Assembly (NCBI GenBank): GCA_030704615.1
Contig: CM060732.1
Coordinates: forward strand, 67,146,001-67,210,000
From: Takakia lepidozioides
Lineage: Eukaryota; Plantae; Bryophyta
Length of the DNA: 64,000 nucleotides
Reading direction: 5' to 3'
The notes under the pieces were generated by a model that worked only from the letters and a program-made list of their open reading frames with translations, did no database searches and was not told the DNA's origin. The position numbers and the translations under genes are program-made. Shown in pieces: positions 20,959-55,438 of this stretch (position 1 is the stretch's first letter; each line of letters begins with the position of its first letter).

Positions 20959-21150
20959 TATATACAAATATATAAAGCTAAAAATACCTTCACATAATAA
21001 CATGGAATATATAATCATTTTATATACAGTTAGGGTGCAAAACGTTCAAAAACTTCAAAAAGTTGGCTCGAATTTAGGGTTGCTAGGTCGCAGAGTGGCT
21101 GGGACTTGTTTTTTTGGGTTTGCGTCTTCTTAGTGCCAAAGCATCATGAT

Positions 21151-21710
21151 AGCAGGCCGTGTTTCAATCTCTACCCGCTCGAAGGAATGTACCGTGGCCG
21201 CTCTCACAGACCTATCCGACATTACCTGACTATAGACACAAATAGCACATACAAGAGTCTTTTTCATAATGTACGATTGAAGAAGATTGTCCATCGTGCA
21301 AATGTGGGTTCTCGGCTCCTGTTAGTACCATGATTTGGTATTCTACCTGATGTTTACAAGGTTCTTGGGAGAGTCAGCTTTGTCTTAGCAGGTCGTGTTT
21401 CAATCTCTGCCCGCTCAGTTGCACCGTGGTGGTTCTCACGGACCAATCCGACATCACCTTACTATGGATACAAGCAGCACACACAAGATGTACGATGTGA
21501 AGAAGTTTGTCCATCCTGCAAATGTGGTCTGTTGGCTCCTGGTAGTACCATGATTTGGTTTTCTTCCTGATGTTTACAAGGTTTTTGGGAGAGTCAGCTT
21601 GGTCTTAGCAGGCCAGGTTACAATCTCTGCCTGCTCAGCTGCACCATGGTGGTTCTCACAGACCAATCCGACAGTACCTGACTACCGTACACAAGCAGCA
21701 CACACAAGAG
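21151..21710. repeat. ~220-235 bp tandem repeat, about 2.5 copies
   Basis: Units starting AGCAGG...CAATCTCT at 21151, 21387 and 21607. Confidence 0.85.
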
Positions 21711-22096
21711 GTTCTTTGGGTTGATGGACGGTCCAATCCTCCATGGGTCATGACACAAGGTCAAGGTCGACAATGTGGTGAGGGCACCTTCTTCTTCAAC
21801 CTCTTTCTACCTGTTTTATCCTCTCATCAGCTCGGCCCTAAGATTCATATTGAATTCTGTAAATTAGCTCGTTTGGTGGTGGTTAGGAGTGACTTTGACA
21901 AGTTACTGACAATGTGGCAGTGGGAAAGTATCCAAAAACAAATCTAACATAGATGAGGAGAAGCTCGTTGGTGGATCTATGGTGGTTTTGGAGTGATTTT
22001 GACGTGTTACTGTAGGTAGGGTTAGGGCGTCATGTCAGCTGCTTCAGCTGCTAGCTGTAGCAAGGCTGAGGATGTATTCACGATTTGTACATAAGC

Positions 22097-22770
22097 ATGG
22101 ATAGCTGAAGGAGTGCAGGGATAGATTGTAGGTCCAGATTCATCCGAGAGGCCCGGATTTCAAGCTCCAGATCGTATGTCTGTCTCTTGCTTAAGTGAAA
22201 GATGAAAGGTCTGGAAGCTGGAAACAGGTGCACACTCACATTATCCAAAGTTGATTCACGCCAAATGTTTTTCTACTCAACACCCTTGTCAACATGTATG
22301 TTAAGTGTGTGGAGCATCATGGATGCTCACCAAGTTTTCCACAGAGTGCCTCAACGATCTTTGATCACGTGGAATATAATGTTGGCAGGATTTACCAAGG
22401 ATGGGTGTGGTACGAATGCTTTGGAGACCTATGAGCAACTGCTGCGCGAAGGGTGAAGCCCAACCACATCACGTTTGTTTGTGTTTGCAATGTGTGTGCA
22501 AGGCTGGGAGCTCTAGAAAAGGGGAAAGAGGTCCATGGTGACATCGTCAAAGCTGGATTTGTACCAGATGTCATTCTGAACCCTGCCCCGGTGGACATGT
22601 ATGCCAAATGTGGGTGCATTGAGGATGCCAAGGGAGTGTTCAACACTATGGCTCAATGAGATGTGGTGTCGGAAGCTCAACCACATCATGTTTGTGTGCG
22701 TTTGTAGTGCGTGTGCAAGCCTGACAGCCCTAGAAAACACATGCAGGTCATCCATGATGTCCTCCCCCAT
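22097..22770 (+). pseudogene. PLS-class PPR gene fragment
   Basis: TWNIMLAGF, KPNHITFVCV, GKEVHG, MYAKCGCIEDAKGVF, with stops and frameshifts. Confidence 0.85.
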
Positions 22771-22942
22771 GTCTCACAGACTGGAAACAAGTTCAGGGAA
22801 GTTTTCTGCCTAACTTCATTTTCATCAGACAATTTCATGGCAGCAGACATGGCTTTGGCCACTACAGCCTCTAAGTTAGATTTATCCAGCAGACTTGCGG
22901 ATCCAGATTCAGATCCTTGAGAATTTTTGGGCATCCATGCAG

Positions 22943-24666
22943 GGGTTCAGCTACAGGGTCATTGGTGGCGTATGCACTCTCGATCATTGGCATTGACCCT
23001 GTCAAGCATGGTCTCTATTATCCTCTCCCAAGTGCATGTTTGTGAACCTTGATTGATGACAGCTCATATAGCCTCTACTTGCTATATTTACTACTCAACA
23101 AGGTTTTCATATGTGTAATGCTGAAGCAATAACTGAACCTGGACACGGACGCCAAGTCCAGGAGCTGTGAGACACAAGCTAAACTTGTTGCTGACATGGG
23201 GGTTGGGCATGCAGGGCTCCTATTTGAATGGTTTTTGAATGAGGAACGGCAGTCGTTGCCTGATATTGACACTGACTTTTGTCTTGAGCAGTGTGACAAG
23301 GTGGGTACAATGCCACAGAACTCTGCAAGCCCCAATACACCTGCATGTACGTGGGAAGTACCGTTAGGAGGGAAGACGGTTGACAGCTGGAGGGGAACAG
23401 GATGGCGCAACAAAGTGAATGAATTGTGCTGACAGAAACAGAGGCTGTTACAAGATGTAATTAAAGGAACTTTATGCCTTGGATTTTCTCCCGTAAAATG
23501 AACTAAAGCTGACGAGGGATGCCACAAGTGATTGCATATGTTACCAACAAATATGGAGAGGACCAGGTAGCACAAATCGCAACATTGACACGATTGACAT
23601 CAAAAGCTGTATTGAAAGATGTGGGGTGTATGCTGGGGAAGCCCGTGAATGTGCTGAGTTGATCGAGCTGGTCAAGAACTGTGTTTGATGTTTGGTTTCT
23701 CTAATTTAATGGTTTGGAGGTCCAATTTCACTTTATCTCCTTTTGGCATGTTTCACCTTACTTGAGGCCTTGGTTAAATTGATCTTGTGTCAGTTTATTG
23801 TGCTTCACCTGCTTTTATATGATTTCACCCGGGGATAAAATATATAGATGGATGGTAACAGGTGCCAAGTATTTGTGGGAAGACTATGAAGTTGGCAAAC
23901 ATGATAATAGGCAACTCTCCCTCCAAGAAGTTTGTCAAGCGCTATCATGAGAACTTGGAGGTTCATCCCTAATTGATTTCATGTTATCTTTGCTTAGCAG
24001 GTGGAACACAGTGATTTCCTCATCTTTTTCCTTGTGATCTGATTCTCATTCTGGGTAGGGTTTTAACCTTCGACATAAGTAAACATACAGTTTTTCTGTG
24101 TTCTGATTCCAGCTTCGGCTCGTTGAAATGTGAGCCAATACAGGATTGTCAATCTGTATGTCTCCCCTCATGAATACAAGCTATATAGCTATATCGACAT
24201 TATCCAAGGTCTCTTGGGAAGGTCTTGATGCTGACTCAAATCTATACTGATGGGGCAGGTGAAGGCGTGGGTAGACATGGCCATGGCATTGGAGGACACT
24301 CATAAGAGCTTTGGTGTGCATCCAACAGGCGTGGTCATTGCTCCTGCATCCTTCCCTCTGGCTAAGGTCATTCTCCCCAGGATTATTGACCCCGATTATT
24401 GACCCATGCAGGTAGTTCCCTTACGGCATGCCCTTGGTGAGAAGGGCATGGTGGTCACCGAGTACACAATGGATGGAGTTGAGGCCCTGGGTTTGCTGAA
24501 GATGGACGTGTTGGGTCTGAAGAATCTCACTTTGATAGCACTTGTTTACAAGCAGCTGGTGCATGATAACTATGGCTTAGAGCTGGTGCCATTGGAGAAG
24601 CTACCCACTAACAATATCAAAACGTTTGAGCTTCTTGCAGGTGGTCAACTTGACGGTATATTCCAG
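22943..24666 (+). pseudogene. dnaE: Intron-containing fragment of a bacterial-type DNA polymerase III alpha subunit; exons 22943-23010, 23215-23300, 23528-23670, 23862-23960, 24259-24366, 24412-24666
   Basis: [74 protein letters not shown] and GIFQ occur in DnaE order. Introns are GT-AG except one mutated acceptor (AA at 23526-23527). One frameshift near 23645. Confidence 0.9.
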
Positions 24667-25109
24667 GTTTGGTTTGCTTCTCTCTTCTGACTAGACAAAC
24701 ATATTGCAAGGTGCAGCAGAATAGAACTTGCATCAGAGTGGGAAGTTTCAAGAGGCTAACAAATGTTGACCACCTCGGAATAGAAGCCTTCTATACTCAT
24801 ACCTTGTCTCCTTTTGAACACGACCATGAACCCTTTCTGAACAAAAGGCTGGGGAGCTCTTCTATTCAGGCTATCCAGCTGAAACTCAACTGCTAAAAAA
24901 CTACATTGCTTGAGGCTGGACAAACTTCCTTACAAAAACGTGTTAAAGTCTCCTTTCACTGGACCCTAACGCCGGGTGGTGGTCTACCACTTCCACTGGA
25001 CGACATATACGCTGAAGTATAATAAGAACTTGACCACACAGTCTTATAACTCAAGAGTACAGATATGCAATTGCTTGCCTTGTAACATGGTCTGTAGAAC
25101 TCTACAAAT

Positions 25110-25775
25110 CTCACCAGCTTGTCATGTGTGTAAAGAGGTGCATGGTTGCATCACCAAAGCTGGAATTGTACCAGATGTGATTCTGAACAATACCCTCCTG
25201 GGCATGGATAGCTGAAGGTGCAAGGATAGAGAGTGGGTGCAGATTCATCCAAGAGGGCCGGATTTCAAGCTCCAGATTACCTATGATTCCCTGTGGAAGG
25301 ATAGCTACAAGAAACCTGCATAGGTAGATGGTCAACTGGAAGCCGCAGCAGCAGCGGCACAATTGATAAAATCAGGCACTGCTAATGAAGGCACCTACTT
25401 CAACACATGAGACCCTGTTTTTCCCTCTTATCAGAATCAGCCCTAAATTTCTATGATGAATTCTGCAAGTTAGCTGGTTGAATGAATGTAGTTTGGAGTG
25501 ACTTTGACATAATACTGCCAATGTGACAACATGAAAGTATCCAAAAACAGGTAACAGAGATGAGGACAAGGTGTGGAATGAATACTTTTTTGACCCCAGT
25601 CAATGGTGGGACAACCGAGGCAAAAAGGTGTATGCTTGTCAATTACCATTTGTCATTATGAACACTGCCCTGGTGGAAATGTATGCCAAATGTGGGTGCA
25701 TCGAGGATGCAATGTGAGTGTTCAACACTATGGCTGAATGAGATGTCGTGTCATGGAGTGCAATGCTTGCAGCCA
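25110..25775 (+). pseudogene. Further PPR gene fragments
   Basis: KEVHGCITKAGIVPDVILNNTL and NTALVEMYAKCGCIEDA...DVVSWSAML. 25207-25285 resembles 22100-22180 and 25458-25570 resembles 21852-21962. Confidence 0.75.
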
Positions 25776-28700
25776 CCGCGCTACCTGTCAACACTTGACA
25801 ACTCCCAAACCTCTAGTACTTGACTGCTAGAATGGGGTAAGGGTTCCCTACCTGCAATTTTCCATTTTGCACATATCCAGTTTGTGTAATGGTGCTTCGA
25901 CATATTCTTAGCGATGTTAGTTTGTTTCACATATGTCAATATTGTTATTGCTATTATATTACCTGAAAGCTTGCTCAAGTATCTTCTGCCGTTTTCGGGC
26001 TGAATGGCAGTTGAAGGTAGGTGAACAAGTCCGGCCAAGCCAGTGTATGCATCTTCTGCTCAGGCATTTTGGTGTTTTCGTGTGCTTTCAATGTTGCTTT
26101 CATGTTTCAATGCTGCTAGAGTCAGGCCCATGACTACGGTCATGTACACGACTATCTCCCATCCACATAGCTTACGCCACGTGCCACTTTCACCCCTCGT
26201 GTTTGTCCATATTCATGCCAGGTGCAGTATCCAGAGTGCGCCATGGAAGTCATATGTTCCAGTCATAATGATCACCCCCCATCCTGCACAATTGACTCCA
26301 TGTGTGGACCTGGGAGTAAATGTCCGAAGTCATATATGCCAGTCACGAAAGACCCCCCTGCTCCATATTGTCATGTCCTATATTCTCCACGTGTAGTCAT
26401 ACATGCCAATCTTGGAAGACTCCCTCTCCTCACCCTGTCGTGCCACGTGTTGTTCTCGATATTTTCCATGTGTTGTCCTGGGGTTAATCTGCGGAAGTCG
26501 TATATGCCAGTCGTGAAGACCTCGTCGCCTTCCATTTGACGTGACACGTGGCATATCCCTTCCGTTCCATGTGAAGCTGACATGGATTCGTAGTCATTTA
26601 CTACGGTCTTATCAATGGCTATGATTAGGCATCCCCGTTGCCACGTCAACAGTGAGCAGATACAACTCTATGGTGCTTACGACTCATTTGTCACAACTGA
26701 CTGGGTTTATCTGACTGGGCAGTCATGCAGTCATAAAAGGCTGATACGACTTGAAAATAACATACATAAAAACCGGGATCTGTTGTAGTGATAGGCTTCT
26801 TTCCATACCAAGCCTCATAAGGTGTTTTCCATTCAAGGGTCCTCGTTGCTGCTCTATTGAGAACATGCTCCTGCTGTGCCTGTAGATTCTGCCCATAATT
26901 CGATTGGAAGATTTTGTGAGTGCAGCATGCTACGTGCACTCTCGATGATTGTTCGATTATCTCATTCTGCCACGCCCATTTTGTTCTGACCTGTGTAGGG
27001 GGGCCGTGGTCTCATGCACAACTCCCTTCTCTTCAAGATATCTGCAAAAATCTTTACTCATATATTCTCCACCCCTGTTAGTTCCAATCTCATTCAACAC
27101 TTGGGCTTCAAGCTTCTTGAAACAACTGAATACAAACATGAAATAGCTGTGATCGTCTTTGAATAGAACGTAGTATCGTGCACCTCCGATCGAGTCTGAA
27201 CTCATTGGCCCGCACACGTCTGAGTGAAAAAATTCACCGGGGGCTTCAACCATCTTTTTTTCAACTGTGCTATTGACATGCAATCTATGTTGCTTACCAT
27301 AGGGACACCCTTCATAGAAGAAATTGGCGTTCCCATCATCCCGAAGAGACAGTCCTTCCACCATCCGGGTCTTACACATTTTCTTGATAGCTGCAACATC
27401 CAGGTGGCAGCCGAGACGGTTATGCCATAGTTGAAGATCACCTCTTGTCATCGCCGACTCTAAACTGAGTTGTCTCGACTTTTCGGAAACCTCCACGTTT
27501 CCGCTGTTGCTCGCAATGTTTGCTTGTGTCGTAGGTTCGATCACCTCAACCAAGAGTTGGTACAATTTGTCATTTCGAACTCCTTGCATGACAATTTCTC
27601 TTTCCTTGTTAAGCATTCGACAACTCCCACTGCTGTAGACAGTGTCGATGCCTTTGTCTGCAGCTTGCCCAATGGAGAACAGATTCTCTCGTAATTGGGG
27701 ATGTGAAGAACTCGCTTGAGTGTTCCTTGGACTGTCATTCCTTCCACTTGGCTTTGATTTCTCCCACTCCAGCTACCCAGAGCTTGGTATCATCTGCAAT
27801 ATGGACGGGCCACTTCTTGTGAGAAATAGACTCAAAGTTTTTGAACCAAAAAGGTGGACGCGTTGCCGAAGCAAGCGTTACAACTTATGGTGTCACTTGA
27901 CCCAGAAGGGCTACTGCCTTCCGGTAGGAAGGTGGGCCAGTTTTTTAACCATTCTCTACGATCGGTCATGTGCTCTGTCGCTCCTCCATCAGCGTACTGG
28001 ATGTCTCAACCCGTGCAACTGTTAGAATTAGCTGCAAATGCAATGCTCACAGTTTCAGAAGGATCTGCTTGACTACTTGAGACACGTTTCTCTTCATCTC
28101 TCTTCTTGTCTTTGTGCTCTCTGGCCCAATGACCCTTCCCTTTACAGTAGGCACACTTGGTTGGCATGGTAGGCATAGTAGGCACACCTACACTTGTGGC
28201 TGTCAGTTGCAAATGCAACGCTCCCAATGGTCTCAGAGGCATTTGCCTGGCTAGTTGAGACACCTCTAGAGCTCTTCATCTCTCGTCTCCTCTCTACACT
28301 CTCGGACCCAATGACCCTTCTTTTTACAGCAGGCACACTTGTCCTTTTCTTGAGTTCTTTGATGCGCTTTGAATTACACAACTCCTTGTTGTCTTCTGGA
28401 CCTTTCTGTTTCCCCTTTCTTCCCTGGAGACAAAGGTTGGCTTGCCTTTTCTTTCTTGGGAGAAGAATGCTTAGTCTTCATGAGCATCATAATTTTCTAG
28501 CTTGTTTTGAGTATTCTTTCAAGAGTCTCGCTGTGAGTGTTTCTATCGTTTGCTTCTCGGTTGGGACATTATCCCTGAGATAATGTGGCGATAGTCCTTA
28601 GGCAGATTGCAAATCTTGGTGACCTCTGCTGATTGAGTTGTGGGTTCACCAAGGTCATTAAGTTGCCGGGCCAATGCTTCCACTTTACTAATGTGACTTG

Positions 28701-30585: not shown

Positions 30586-32178
30586 TCACTGGATTGCCAG
30601 ATAGTCGCTCTCGTTTTTTGGCAGATAAGAAATCTCCTCATTTGAATTGCAATTTGATTGGATTGGCAGTGTTGTGCTTGCAGATGAGTACACCCGGGCC
30701 ACTGCATTCTTCGCCTGTTTCTCCCAATTGGTGCACAATGTGATAATAAGAAGGATAACAGCCTGGGTTGCAATGCCACCCATCATTCCCATCCACAGTC
30801 CCTTGGAATTGAAGTGGAAGACAAAGGCCAGTGTAATAGCGCTTGGCAATCCCACGATGTAATAGGCTGCAAGGTTTGCAAATGCTCCAAAAGCTTGCCA
30901 GCCACATCCCCTAGCCACACCTGAAAGAACAGATTGCAGAGCATCCATGCCTGTAACTGCTGCCAACAAGGGCACACAATGCGACACATAGTTGATCACC
31001 TCAGCTTCGTTTGTGAAAGCCAAACCAATCACATTGCGCAATGACAACAGCAAGACTCCCATCGACAAACCGACCATCAGGGCCATTATGATCCCCACTG
31101 TGACAGCAGATTTGGCATGTCGTGGGTGGCCAGCTCCAAGCTCATTGGACACCCGAGTGCTAACCCCTGCACTGAGGCCTAATGGAATCATGTATGCGAC
31201 CGATAGGCTTGTCAAACAGATGGAGAGAGTGGATGTTTCCAACTGAGGGTTCGGCATCAACCCTGAGAGAAGCACCAGCATTTCAAATGACCAGTATTCC
31301 AAGCATATCATGACTGCAGAGGGGATGGCCAGCTTGAAGAAAGCCCCAAGGTCATTAAATGCCTCCATTGAGAAAGATGTCCAAGTCTTTTTACAGTTGG
31401 GTGAGAATTTCACATATGCAACCAGCAGCAACACATACAACCAATTCGAAAGGCCACTGGCAATGGCTGCTCCACGAAATCCCACCCCCAACTTGAAGAT
31501 CAGCAGCCAACAGAGGGGGATATGAAGGGCCAATGTGGCCATCGACATCAAGGTCATGGGCAACACTACACTCTGTGTTTGCAAGAACCTCACCAAGGGA
31601 TGAAAGGAGGCAATTGCAAACAACGATGGCAACAGCCACCGGGCATACACCCCTGCCATATCTGCAATCTCAGGGTCCTGCCAAAGAGCCTTAAGAACAT
31701 AACCCATGTTGTACCATAGAATGGCAACAGGTATGGTTGTGATGTATGTGACCAACAAAGCTCGTTGGAGAAATATACCAAGCATGCGGTATTGCTTGGC
31801 CCCATATGCCTGCCCGCACAATGTTTCCAGTGCGGAGCTCATTCCTAGTAGAATGGATGAGCCTGTGACAGATGCAAAGGAGGTGGCTATTGAGGAGCTG
31901 GCAAGTTCAAGCTCACCCAAGTGCCCCACAAACATACTTGACACAACAAACAATGAACCTTGAAGCAAACTTACAAAGATCATTGGCCCAGCCACCCTTA
32001 GCTGCTTCTTAATTTCCCCCGATAGCCAATCCACTGTCCATAAGTGCACCCCTGTCTCGTCTGAGTGCCCATTACTAAATGGAAGCTGCACAATTGAATC
32101 TGTCTTAGCTGTTGGAATGGAGAGGTCAACTGCCTCCTGGCCTACCAAGGGCTCCCTCAAAGACTCCTGGTCAGCCAT
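30586..32178 (-). CDS. MATE/DETOXIFICATION-family efflux transporter, intronless, 530 aa
   Basis: Uninterrupted ORF with FVGHLGELEL, ALETLCGQAYGA, LEYWSFE, STRVSNELGAG and LSGVARGCGWQ. Confidence 0.95.
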   Translation of the reverse strand: MADQESLREPLVGQEAVDLSIPTAKTDSIVQLPFSNGHSDETGVHLWTVDWLSGEIKKQLRVAGPMIFVSLLQGSLFVVSSMFVGHLGELELASSSIATSFASVTGSSILLGMSSALETLCGQAYGAKQYRMLGIFLQRALLVTYITTIPVAILWYNMGYVLKALWQDPEIADMAGVYARWLLPSLFAIASFHPLVRFLQTQSVVLPMTLMSMATLALHIPLCWLLIFKLGVGFRGAAIASGLSNWLYVLLLVAYVKFSPNCKKTWTSFSMEAFNDLGAFFKLAIPSAVMICLEYWSFEMLVLLSGLMPNPQLETSTLSICLTSLSVAYMIPLGLSAGVSTRVSNELGAGHPRHAKSAVTVGIIMALMVGLSMGVLLLSLRNVIGLAFTNEAEVINYVSHCVPLLAAVTGMDALQSVLSGVARGCGWQAFGAFANLAAYYIVGLPSAITLAFVFHFNSKGLWMGMMGGIATQAVILLIITLCTNWEKQAKNAVARVYSSASTTLPIQSNCNSNEEISYLPKNESDYLAIQ

Positions 32179-32769
32179 CCCTATCACTATGTTCCAACGA
32201 GAGCCAACAAAGGGCTCTGTGAATCTTCAGTGTTGTGTCAGATCTACTTGAGAGTTGTTGTAGTACTGAAGCTGCCTGGCAATTGATGGCTGGATGACCC
32301 ACTTCAGTTCAAATACCCCCAGCAAATGACCATAGCGGACTGCAGGCTGATCGATATGGAGGCCAGACTGAGTGGAGGGATGGTGGCTTAGGTCATGACC
32401 CGACGTCAAACAATTTTGTTGCTCGTATCCACTGTACTGTACTATGCAGTCGGAAAATCTGGGTAAACCTTACCACATCTGAACTTCGCTCTGGTTCCCT
32501 ATGGCTTCCCCAAGATGACACAATGAATTCCTCCTTCTTTCTTCTCTCTCCCCCTCTGTCTCAACTGTCCCCTGCACCTGAGGACCTTGCACCCCTCTCG
32601 CAGCGACATCTCGAATTAGCAAGAAGGATATTCCACCAGGAAGTGAAATTTGAAGACAGCCAGTATTTAACAACTCCGACAATGATCGCAGCAAGCCCCC
32701 TGCCGCATCATGCAGAACCACTTCTAGAGCAATCAAGGAGCACAAATCACCGGGGAGAATGAAGCTACC

Positions 32770-51934: not shown

Positions 51935-54900
51935 ATGGCTTCCTCTGAAGCGGAGTTCTTCTCTGACGACAAACCAGTGCCGTTCTCCCAGGAAGTCCTT
52001 GACAATGGATTTGCAATTGTTCTGGAACATGTCTTGGCTACCCGTTTTCAGCTTCAGAATGGCTCCATCTTTTTGGAGAAAGAGGTGTACGATTTGAAAG
52101 GGAAGTTGTTGAAATACTCTTTCCAAAACCGTGATGAGACGGCTCATATCAGCCAGTGGAGAGTGCGCCCTGGTCGATACAGAGTACTTGGAGAGCCTCG
52201 GCGAAAGTCCCTTGGGTCATATGTGACGCCCGGGACTGCTGCTTCGGTCGTTGAAGACAAGAGGGAGGTGGTGGTGAAAAAAGAACAGACGTCCTCCACT
52301 CCAATCGTTGAGCTTTCGGACGTCCTATGATGACATAAGTGAAATTCCAAATCCAGTCCTTCCTACTGTGGTTGGAGAAGCTGATGAAGAAGAGATTTGT
52401 AGTGTCATTCCAAAATTACGGGCGATGGGAGGAATGGCTGGGTTCAAAAGTGAGTTGCAAGGAATTGATTGGGAATCTTTGAAGCAGGTGCCTGTGAAGT
52501 TCTTGCCAGAGACTTTTGATGGCGATATCCTATTCGAGCTATCTCCTCCTCCGCGAGTTGGAGGTGTAACAATCATGATGCATGGAATGGACAAGAAACA
52601 CGACGGGCACCCGTGGTGCAGAACAAAAACATCCAATATTCAGAATGATGACAAACTTGTTTTCAGGAGAACAGTTTGCAATGGACACCTTAGGTGTGAT
52701 AATTTGAATTGCAGACACTTTCTTCAGTCTGGGGTTCATAATCAAAGCGAATGGGAGGGTCTGGCGGAAAATCCATTTCAGCCTAGGACTGCCCCTCCAC
52801 CGGCAAACACTTTCGTCTGCAAATTCTGCAAACTTGTGCCATCCTGCTTGGCACTCTGCGGAGCAAGAATGTACTATGTTGTCCACCGTTTGAAAACAAT
52901 GACAAGAGCTTGTGTGCATTTCGGATTCCATAACCATCCTGTCTCGAAGGGGGATTACAGGGAGAGTGTTGAGACAATATCGAGGTTGATTAAACAGGAG
53001 TTTGGGAGAAACCCATCCGCAACAACATCTGCAATTGCTCTTGGCGCAAGCAAGTCCTTCTTGGAAAGCCATATTTTGAGTGGAGGGGATTCTTTGGGGA
53101 CTAAACTTGACGGTGCAGCATTGGACCTGGTTATGGATCATTTCTCCACTTTGAGTTCACCTAACATTCGGCATCAGATCAATGCATTAAGAATGGGCTC
53201 TGGTATCAGAGGCTACATAGACAACATTTTGGAGTTGAAACGAGTGAGCAAGTACGATTACATCCAGGACAATGTATTCCCAGGTCAATGTGCCATCAAA
53301 AATTTTCTTTTCAAAATGTCGACTGTTGGGGAGGGCAGTGGGGTTAGCCTCGTGAAGCGGATGCAGAAGACTGGGGACTTGCAGAACTGTTTTCTTATGT
53401 TTGATCATGTGAAACAAGTGAAGGATTGGACGACAATGGCTTGTCATGTCTACGATCCAATGTACCAACGAGTTATGACAATTGCAGTTTGTGACATGCA
53501 ATCCGAGGATACGGAATCCCAGAAGCTCATGTGGAATTCCCTGATACGTGTCATGGGCTGCCATCTCCAAATTTCGCAGGTTTCATGGCGGATAGTGCTC
53601 AAGCAAATTTCAATGTTGTTCGTATTGTCTTCGGATCGGGCGACCCAAAAGTGCCAATGCGAGGAAGAGAGCGTACATGTCTATTCCATTGGATACAATC
53701 TCTGGAAAAACATACAAAGTCGGACATCAAACCAGAGATGCAGACTCAGCACCGTAAATTGTGCAAATAGTACAAAGATGCTAGAACAATGAAGGAGGCG
53801 GACACTTTGTTCCAGACAATTCGTGCTTGGTGGTTCTCTTCTGGAGCTGCATCACTTGAGAGTATGAGAGCATTGGAAGATTGGCTGGCGTTTTGGCACT
53901 TCTGGTATAGACAGTGGGAAGCAGCCATGGTAGTGGTACGAGGCTTATATTTCTTGTTTTATTCATACATTTACTTTCCATTTTATTGTGTCCTCGCTTT
54001 CTTTATGTTGTTTTCTGTTCACTGTTTTGAAGTGTGGTTCTGCACTTTGCAGAACATGTCCATTGAGGAAATGGCGGACATGTCATCTTGCAATTTGGCA
54101 AAAATTGTGCACAACGCATGGTTGCAGCAGTCTGGGAAACGAGGTCGGGATTTGTATGTGGCAGCAACAGATGATTTGATACGTGTCTTGCAACAACAAA
54201 CCCGATACCGTGATTTCTTACGAGGTGGGGTTGGTGGTAAGGGTTCGGACAAATGGGAGTTGATGTTGCGTGCTGCAAACAGATCTGGGAATCCAATGAA
54301 GATAGCACGGGCAGTGAGCATGTATGCCTAGGGAACGCCACTTGTTTCTAGAGTTCCACATCTTGAAGGGGAGGAGAGATTCGGCTCCTGTAAGAGGAAA
54401 TTGAACACTCCACCTGGTTCGGATTCCGATTCCCACAGGGCAGACCGTGATAACTTCTCGAAGCCTCGTGTTCCCCTACATGACAGCTCCATGTCCGGAA
54501 CCTCCATTGTGGAGGAACCTCCAACACGACGGCAAGCTCCAGCATCAAACAGTGCCACTGAAATGGTGCAAGAGAGAAACAACCCCCTTGATGTGCTTGA
54601 GTCCGCATGCCCCGACCACGTTTGGCACATAGAACGCACAAGTGTAGGGTCTCGTGTGAAATGTACAGCGATCAGGGCAACTAATTTCGAGAAGTGCACT
54701 TCATCTATATCCAGAGGTGGTGCCCGAACTCCTGCTCCAACTTTCACGGGTTTGATGCGTCCATACGGTCAACCAGAAGCCAAGAACCACAAGTTTTGGT
54801 TCTGCGCAGATGATTGTGTCAGATGTGTGCATGGAACTATGCGTCCTTCCGTAGTGATGAAGCCATCTCCTCCAACCGTTTGGCCCGTGAAGGTGGGAAC

Positions 54901-55438
54901 ACATCTCAGCTTTCAGGAGATTGAAATGCTGGAGGAGGCAGGTTTTTCCGTTGCGAGACAACCCCAACTCCATACATGTGTTACTACTTCTGCATCCTCC
55001 CGGGTCCCCCCGGCAAATCGTGACTTGTGGCCAACCAAACGAGATGGAAAGCTCGTTCGGCGTTTCCCTCCAACCGCTGAACACTTTGGCAAAGTGGAGT
55101 CCGCAAGAATGCTCCAAGCTCGTGTTGGAAGCACCACGGAAGTACCCCATCCAGGATATGGTCGGGTATTCACAATCATCACTTCCACATCTACTGTTCA
55201 TGACAGGACCTACGACATCACGGTTTCCAATTTCCCCAATTGCACATGTCCTGATTTTGTGAATATGCTATCAACCAGTTTGGGCAAGAGAGGTAAATTC
55301 ATACCCTGCAAACATTTGTATTTCATATTTTTGAAGAGGATGGTTTGCGATCCCAAACGTGACAACTTCATTCACCAGGCCACTATGAGTTTCAATGAGG
55401 TCGATACTCTATTGCAGCGGGATACAACACATGGGTAG
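51935..55438 (+). pseudogene. MULE-type transposase with N-terminal Cys/His (GCM/WRKY-like) region and C-terminal SWIM finger; disrupted
   Basis: C...C...HNHP, FDHVK, FMADSAQANF...CLFH, CNLAK(E)IVH and CTCPDF...CKHL. Frameshifts near 52325 and 53560, stops at 53768 and 54329, intron 53936-54052. Confidence 0.85.

Follow-up and report, generated by a model that had tools for sequence, protein, structure and literature searches.

How does the coding sequence of a bacterial replicase come to lie, interrupted by introns, in the nuclear DNA of a land plant? The question is raised by positions 22943-24666 (+ strand) of a 64,000-nucleotide stretch of Takakia lepidozioides DNA (assembly GCA_030704615.1, contig CM060732.1, positions 67,146,001 to 67,210,000), which as a whole we call the window. 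Six exon-like pieces, split by five short introns, occupy these positions and encode part of DnaE, the alpha subunit of the family-C bacterial DNA polymerase III (Pol III). In the textbook view, plastids gave up the bacterial Pol III replicase at an early stage of their evolution, and the family-A POP enzymes took its place. We find that the fragment is very probably a dead partial copy, made at the DNA level, of a nuclear dnaE gene that goes back to the cyanobacterial ancestor of plastids.

Identity and relatives of the fragment

The six exons amount to 771 nt, or about 257 codons. We searched them one at a time and entered them into local alignments as separate rows. In per-exon Pfam scans they were collinear, covering positions 62-260 of the PF07733 (DNA_pol3_alpha) profile and then the start of the PF17657 finger profile. 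Exon 1 (22943-23010) scored 32.6 bits against PF07733 (profile positions 62-90), exon 2 (23215-23300; GLLFEWFLNEERQSLPDIDTDFCLEQCDK) 32.9 bits (86-116), exon 3 (23528-23682) 38.3 bits (115-157), exon 5 (24259-24366; VKAWVDMAMALEDTHKSFGVHPTGVVIAPASFPLAK) 21.7 bits (192-223) and exon 6 (24412-24666; 85 codons) 23.8 bits (226-260), the last continuing into finger positions 1-47 of PF17657. The gathering cut-off of PF07733 is 23.9 bits, which only exons 1, 2 and 3 passed singly. Exon 4 (23862-23960; VPSICGKTMKLANMIIGNSPSKKFVKRYHENLE) is a variable stretch with no Pfam match; it matched a DnaE profile that we built ourselves (E 5e-4) and was also matched in tblastn searches by the algal DnaEs of Chara and Mesostigma.

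Alignment with known structures placed the active site. Exon 2 aligned with residues 386-414 of Escherichia coli Pol III alpha (2HNH), so that its PDIDTDF motif corresponds to PDFDVDF at residues 400-406. Exon 6, which encodes the end of the palm and the first ~47 positions of the fingers, aligned with residues 595-669 of the Thermus aquaticus enzyme (2HPI), its KMDVLGL corresponding to LKMDFLGL. The palm motifs align residue for residue with both bacterial proteins, and all three catalytic aspartates are retained, two in exon 2 and the third in exon 6. In E. coli these are presumably D401, D403 and D555, a numbering based in part on the 2HNH alignment. A sequence-only reading of this DNA had described six exons in DnaE order carrying PDIDTDF and KMDVLGL, and the per-exon scans and structure alignments bear this out; the limits it gave, 22943 and 24666, are exact exon edges, the peptides and motifs it quoted are present where it placed them, and the match to DNA_pol3_alpha on which it made the identification depend was obtained exon by exon.

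The closest relatives of the fragment are algal. An exhaustive HMMER search with exon 6 against 1.84 billion representative proteins gave as top matches a protein of Spirogloea muscicola (63% identity), two Closterium proteins and one of Mesostigma viride. When the Spirogloea protein was used as the query in a word-indexed search, Chara braunii and Mesotaenium endlicherianum were added, and the algal DnaEs ranked above hundreds of cyanobacterial DnaEs of 60-63% identity. Exons 1-2 were 83-87% identical to Spirogloea (exon 1, 83%), and a high-scoring segment pair (HSP) covering exons 5-6 showed 54% identity with Spirogloea and Chara.

In every exon, identity to the algal majority sequence exceeded that to the cyanobacterial majority: 91 versus 78% in exon 1, 86 versus 72% in exon 2, 71 versus 66% in exon 3, 45 versus 30% in exon 4, 65 versus 51% in exon 5 and 64 versus 46% in exon 6. 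In the exon-6 region, the alignment with a cyanobacterial reference (Chroococcidiopsis sp. CCMEE 29, P0167) takes in additional columns and shows 38% identity, compared to 54% for the algal genes. In a maximum-likelihood tree of exon 6, the window fell within a streptophyte-alga clade (the window and six algal sequences) with support 100/98, and this clade was sister to a mainly cyanobacterial group. The sequence-only reading had noted a likeness to cyanobacterial DnaE and had called for a DnaE phylogeny. That phylogeny joins the window to streptophyte-algal nuclear genes beside Cyanobacteria; both the tree and the per-exon identities make cyanobacteria the second-nearest group, and the nearest relatives are the algal nuclear DnaEs.

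Other searches with exon 6 reached only distant proteins. Pattern scans of bacterial and archaeal genomes and of metagenomes found bacterial DnaEs of 31-58% identity, mostly through KMDVLGLK, and a short-protein search found just two metagenomic fragments (43-46%). Two metagenomic matches, P0011 and P0012, seemed to begin at an exon edge; we rejected them, as each is a bacterial dnaE split into adjacent ORFs (open reading frames), probably by assembly frameshifts. ENA metagenome contigs on which dnaE is split into several adjacent ORFs mimic exon-like fragments in protein-level match lists. We also observed that a cluster of giant proteins from the sponge Ephydatia muelleri (5262-5979 aa) matched exon 6 in 16 stretches, the best of them (E 3.8e-14) over query residues 16-38; this is probably a repeated short motif like the LGLLKMD region, unrelated to polymerases.

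The class of genes to which these algal relatives belong has been described. Nuclear, plastid-targeted DNApol-III alpha of Archaeplastida was reported by Antoine, Burki, Archibald, Pelletier and Delmont in 2026 (bioRxiv 10.64898/2026.05.23.727376). According to this preprint, which names Closterium and Chara among the streptophyte green algae, the gene occurs in these and in red algae and is absent from Chlorophyta; the algal sequences form a clade beside Cyanobacteria; dnaX (tau/gamma) goes together with alpha in green algae; and alpha was previously undocumented in eukaryotes save Paulinella. Land plants are not mentioned there. The novelty assumed by the sequence-only reading is reduced accordingly: the gene class is known, and what appears to be new is its trace in an embryophyte. 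The 120 best relatives of the Spirogloea protein included no full-length land-plant DnaE, and literature searches for Pol III alpha that covered Chara, Takakia, hornworts, lycophytes and ferns returned no paper.

The algal members we recovered are Spirogloea muscicola SM000033S12379, Chara braunii CBR_g30249, Closterium sp. NIES-54 CAI7739894, Mesotaenium ME000225S03422 and Mesostigma Mv08307. The five proteins scanned are 1008-2529 aa long and three are clearly complete (1493-1917 aa). The complete ones possess PHP, palm, finger and HhH domains, and OB was found in four of the five scanned; N-terminal extensions place the start of the catalytic core 120-180 residues later than in bacteria. 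The fragment resembles these genes in lineage, clade and, as shown below, in the intron positions of Closterium. It differs from them in that it comprises only ~257 codons with a frameshift whereas the algal genes are complete, and in that its host is a land plant. Cyanobacterial DnaEs such as that of Chroococcidiopsis share the family and its motifs, but are less similar in every exon and have no spliceosomal introns. The split-intein site of the cyanobacterial DnaE-N/DnaE-C forms lies downstream of the portion preserved in the window.

Exon edges, truncation and decay

All exon edges of the fragment have the form AG/.../GT (a slash marks the splice junction), with the sole exception of the exon-3 acceptor. 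Introns 1 (23011-23214, 204 nt), 3 (23683-23861, 179 nt) and 4 (23961-24258, 298 nt) are GT-AG. Intron 2 (23301-23527, 227 nt) begins with GT but has AA at its acceptor dinucleotide (23526-23527). Exon 1, whose peptide runs (R)...(G), has a phase-2 start that follows cag/ and a phase-1 end that is followed by gt; the donors of exons 2 and 5 are AAG/gtgggt and AAG/gtcatt, and exon 6 ends at CAG/gtttgg. Intron 5 (24367-24411) is 45 nt long, which would be below the normal length of plant introns; it consists in part of a 13-nt tandem duplication (GATTATTGACCC, twice) and gives a TGA if read through.

We exon-mapped the genomic loci of Chara braunii (BFEA01000333.1) and Closterium sp. NIES-54 (CASDOD010013735.1) for comparison. 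Closterium has GT-AG introns at GPG/RGSAAG (phase 2), at IEH/G (phase 1) and, all in phase 0, at RDK/I, TKL/VP, DAM/LL and LSQ/VVP. The six corresponding exon edges of the window coincide with these six positions. At five of them the phase agrees as well; at the exon-3 donor, the frameshift in that exon prevents a comparison of phase. Thus, exon 1 has the edges and phases of GPG/RGSAAG...IEH/G, the donor hexamer of exon 2 (gtgggt) and its phase are identical in the window and in Closterium, the edges of exon 4 match TKL/VP and DAM/LL, and the donor of exon 5 lies at the place and phase of LSQ/VVP. Overall, the intron load of dnaE varies from two introns in Chara, where residues 24-1496 lie in one exon, to ~26 in Closterium. 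Several junctions of the Closterium gene model deviate from GT-AG and could stem from annotation errors.

The common intron positions, together with the placement in the streptophyte-alga clade, argue for vertical descent from a nuclear gene and not for a recent bacterial transfer. Judged from these comparisons, the ancestor shared by Zygnematophyceae and land plants would already have had a nuclear dnaE.

Only part of that gene is preserved. We searched the whole 64-kb window in six frames, by tblastn with six full-length DnaEs and with a profile hidden Markov model of 29 DnaEs. The DnaE signal was confined to 22911-24669, which corresponds to profile positions 359-618 of ~1180, and neither search found a PHP domain, the rest of the fingers, HhH or OB at any other place in the 64 kb. 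As the introns are merely 45-298 nt long, the missing exons would have lain within reach of the window. One tblastn HSP with Chara hinted at an upstream exon at 22848-22934; we rejected this candidate, since the translation of 22848-22940 gave no score against the DnaE profile even at maximum sensitivity.

The preserved part is also damaged. A three-frame reading of exon 3 shows that the peptide changes frame somewhere after the GK codons (23636-23641) and before AELIELVKN (23653-23679); followed without the shift, the first frame meets an in-frame TGA at 23660-23662. In Closterium, the counterpart of this exon is flanked on both sides by phase-0 introns and should have a length divisible by three; the 155 nt found in the window therefore indicate a frameshift. 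The second lesion is the loss of the acceptor in front of the same exon, and we also count the short intron 5 with its tandem duplication among the lesions.

Substitutions tell a similar story. Among 75 columns that are invariant in 29 DnaEs (7 streptophyte-algal and 22 cyanobacterial), 10 (~13%) are altered in the window, as are 14 of the ~117 columns with at least 90% conservation. At four of six conserved arginine positions the codon now reads TGG or TGT, as would result from C-to-T change in CGN: in exon 2 the Arg of FERFL has become Trp (TGG) and that of RDK Cys (TGT), and in exon 4 the Arg of VRGK has become Cys (TGT). Unlike E. coli, the window thus has W and C at the positions aligned to R390 and R411 of 2HNH; we take R390 to help bind the phosphates of the incoming nucleotide. 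In the exon-6 tree, the terminal branch of the window measures 1.21 changes per column, compared to 0.02-0.5 for most algal sequences. The ratio of observed to expected CpG (0.35 in the fragment, 0.53 in the window and 0.28 in an intact-looking MATE ORF nearby) was not discriminating.

We conclude that the fragment has no polymerase function. The truncation is absolute, while the frameshift and the loss of the acceptor are strong but not absolute evidence.

Origin of the copy

Taken together, the full-architecture algal homologues, the clade placement and the Closterium introns support the core of the sequence-only reading, in which part of an intron-rich nuclear dnaE had been copied; of the two origins it offered for that gene, endosymbiotic or horizontal, they favor the endosymbiotic one. 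Several observations weigh against this reading. The exon-6 tree was built on 82 columns, and its inner order is unresolved. The Chara gene is without introns in this region, and the sharing of introns rests on one algal genus. The edge after GIFQ (CAG/gtttgg) at the end of exon 6 is not an intron in Closterium. An alternative in-frame pairing for intron 2 is available, with donor GTACAA at 23305 and acceptor aag/ at 23528, and a GTGAAT donor at 23645 could bypass the frameshifted part of exon 3; an in-frame spliced product of the six exons through such cryptic sites is therefore conceivable. Finally, how far the copied block truly extends, how old it is and whether a live parent gene exists are matters of inference, not of observation. 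We take the edge after GIFQ to mark an intron specific to the lineage of the parent, within which the copy would have broken off.

The sequence on either side of the exons gives an outline of what was copied. To the left, at 22202-22737 (+), lie pieces of a decayed PLS-type PPR pseudogene, with weak Pfam PPR matches (E 1.8e-5 and 5.5e-5) and an internal repeat (22455-22520 and 22672-22737). The PPR similarity ends at 22737 (...ALEN) and picks up at 25132 (KEVHG...), where the motif resumes in a right flank at 25132-25209 (+; KEVHGCITKAGIVPDVILN) that is 81% identical to 22525-22602. The dnaE-bearing block that interrupts the pseudogene therefore measures at most 2.39 kb (22738-25131). Its ends on both sides of the exons are probably intron sequence of the parent gene: 22738-22942 (+) has no recognisable coding homology and no Pfam match on either strand, and 24667-25131 (+) has no match to the DnaE profile or Pfam. 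The GC content of the block equals that of its surroundings, and the flanking PPR pieces are themselves broken ORFs.

One possibility is that the fragment, while of the same ancestry, was acquired and spread by a gene-capturing transposon of the Pack-MULE, Helitron or CACTA type. The window is rich in transposons, with MULE and copia ORFs, and the block cleanly interrupts a PPR repeat. However, no inverted repeats, long terminal repeats (LTRs) or long direct repeats were found around the block other than those derived from PPR sequence. Neither a target-site duplication nor Helitron ends (TC...CTRR) could be made out by eye at the junctions (ctagaaaa/cacatg ... tgtgtgt/aaagagg), and the 64 kb contain the block only once. 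Capture by a transposon is thus unlikely, although it is the strongest of the alternatives. The sequence-only reading had spoken of a captured partial copy; the partial copy stands, and the capture is left without the terminal repeats or target-site duplication that would mark it. Segmental insertion, repair filler and transposon capture are all candidate modes of copying.

Another possibility is that the locus is a live gene that encodes a truncated DnaE-derived protein or a chimera with the neighboring PPR sequence. The intact catalytic Asp motifs, the mostly canonical splice sites and the cryptic in-frame routes around both lesions could be cited in its favor. On the other hand, the locus has no start and lacks PHP, the remaining fingers, HhH and OB; exon 3 carries a frameshift and a stop; 13% of the invariant columns are altered, among them the column of E. 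coli R390; and the PPR pieces with which a chimera would be formed are broken. We consider a live gene highly improbable.

It could also be speculated that dnaE was transferred recently from a bacterium, for example a cyanobacterial symbiont, and gained introns later, given that the family is bacterial and that cyanobacterial DnaEs are the next-nearest group. This is scarcely credible. The fragment is nested among the streptophyte-algal nuclear DnaEs (100/98), five of its six exons are 64-91% identical to the algal majority as against 46-78% to the cyanobacterial majority, the exon 5-6 region is 38% identical to the cyanobacterial reference, in an alignment that takes in additional columns, as against 54% to the algal genes, and the intron positions agree with those of Closterium.

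Bacterial contamination or misassembly has nothing beyond the bacterial family name to recommend it and is the least probable explanation of all, since five introns of the GT-AG type interrupt the coding sequence, plant PPR pseudogene sequence runs on without a gap at both sides and the GC content is that of the surroundings; the sequence-only reading, which had dismissed contamination on account of the introns, was right in this, and the plant PPR flanks add to its argument.

The most likely history is therefore that of a partial duplicate of a nuclear dnaE gene. In this history, dnaE from the cyanobacterial plastid ancestor would have been relocated to the nucleus. A block running from inside one intron to inside another, with six exons aboard, would later have been copied into a PPR pseudogene, and the copy would then have decayed through the frameshift, the loss of the splice acceptor and the CpG-type changes of Arg to Cys or Trp.

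The degree of conservation bears on the parent gene. The fragment has kept 64-91% identity to the algal majority (45% in exon 4), which indicates that the parent was under purifying selection long after the split from the algae. A neutral copy could not have held 64-91% identity for the >500 million years since the Zygnematophyceae split, so the parent was probably under selection in the land-plant lineage up to the time of copying. From the ~13% of invariant columns that have changed, the copy would be of the order of tens of millions of years old, a rough figure that depends on the neutral rate.

By homology with the algal genes, and in line with the preprint on them, the product of the parent was presumably a plastid-targeted catalytic subunit of a bacterial-type replicase. 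The accepted plastid and mitochondrial replicase of plants is POP, and replication would presumably be the job of the parent's product too; POP belongs to an unrelated family (family A) with an unrelated fold, and the locus holds nothing POP-like. It is quite possible, if short of probable, that T. lepidozioides still holds an intact, expressed, plastid-targeted dnaE. If so, it would be the first embryophyte in which this catalytic subunit of the cyanobacterial replicase is shown to persist beside POP.

For some algae, the account of an early loss has been overturned by the preprint on the algal genes (10.64898/2026.05.23.727376). Read as a partial duplicate of a nuclear gene, the relic in the window is a fossil of a dnaE that selection maintained as far as at least one lineage of embryophytes, and the loss of dnaE is thereby shifted to within land plants.

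Sequences around the block

The window is plant nuclear DNA, as its PPR, MULE, copia and MATE sequences show. A copia-type integrase-like ORF lies at 26957-27616 (-), 2 kb downstream of the block, and a large MULE-type transposase region extends over 52308-55438 (+). Between them, 6 kb from the fragment, 30586-32187 (-) holds an apparently intron-less ORF of 530 aa for a MATE/DETOXIFICATION protein. An exact database look-up of this protein gave no record; its best named relatives are from mosses (Physcomitrium, Ceratodon) and a lycophyte (Diphasiastrum), at 60-68% identity, in keeping with a host among the seed-free land plants.

The immediate neighborhood of the block is a rearranged mosaic. 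Just upstream of the PPR pieces, 21150-21717 contains three tandem copies of a 220-236-bp unit that are 78-88% identical. Two further segments that are not PPR sequence, A (21810-21963) and B (22095-22172), recur beyond the block in swapped order, as B' (25202-25277) and A' (25414-25570), in the same orientation and with 77-88% identity.

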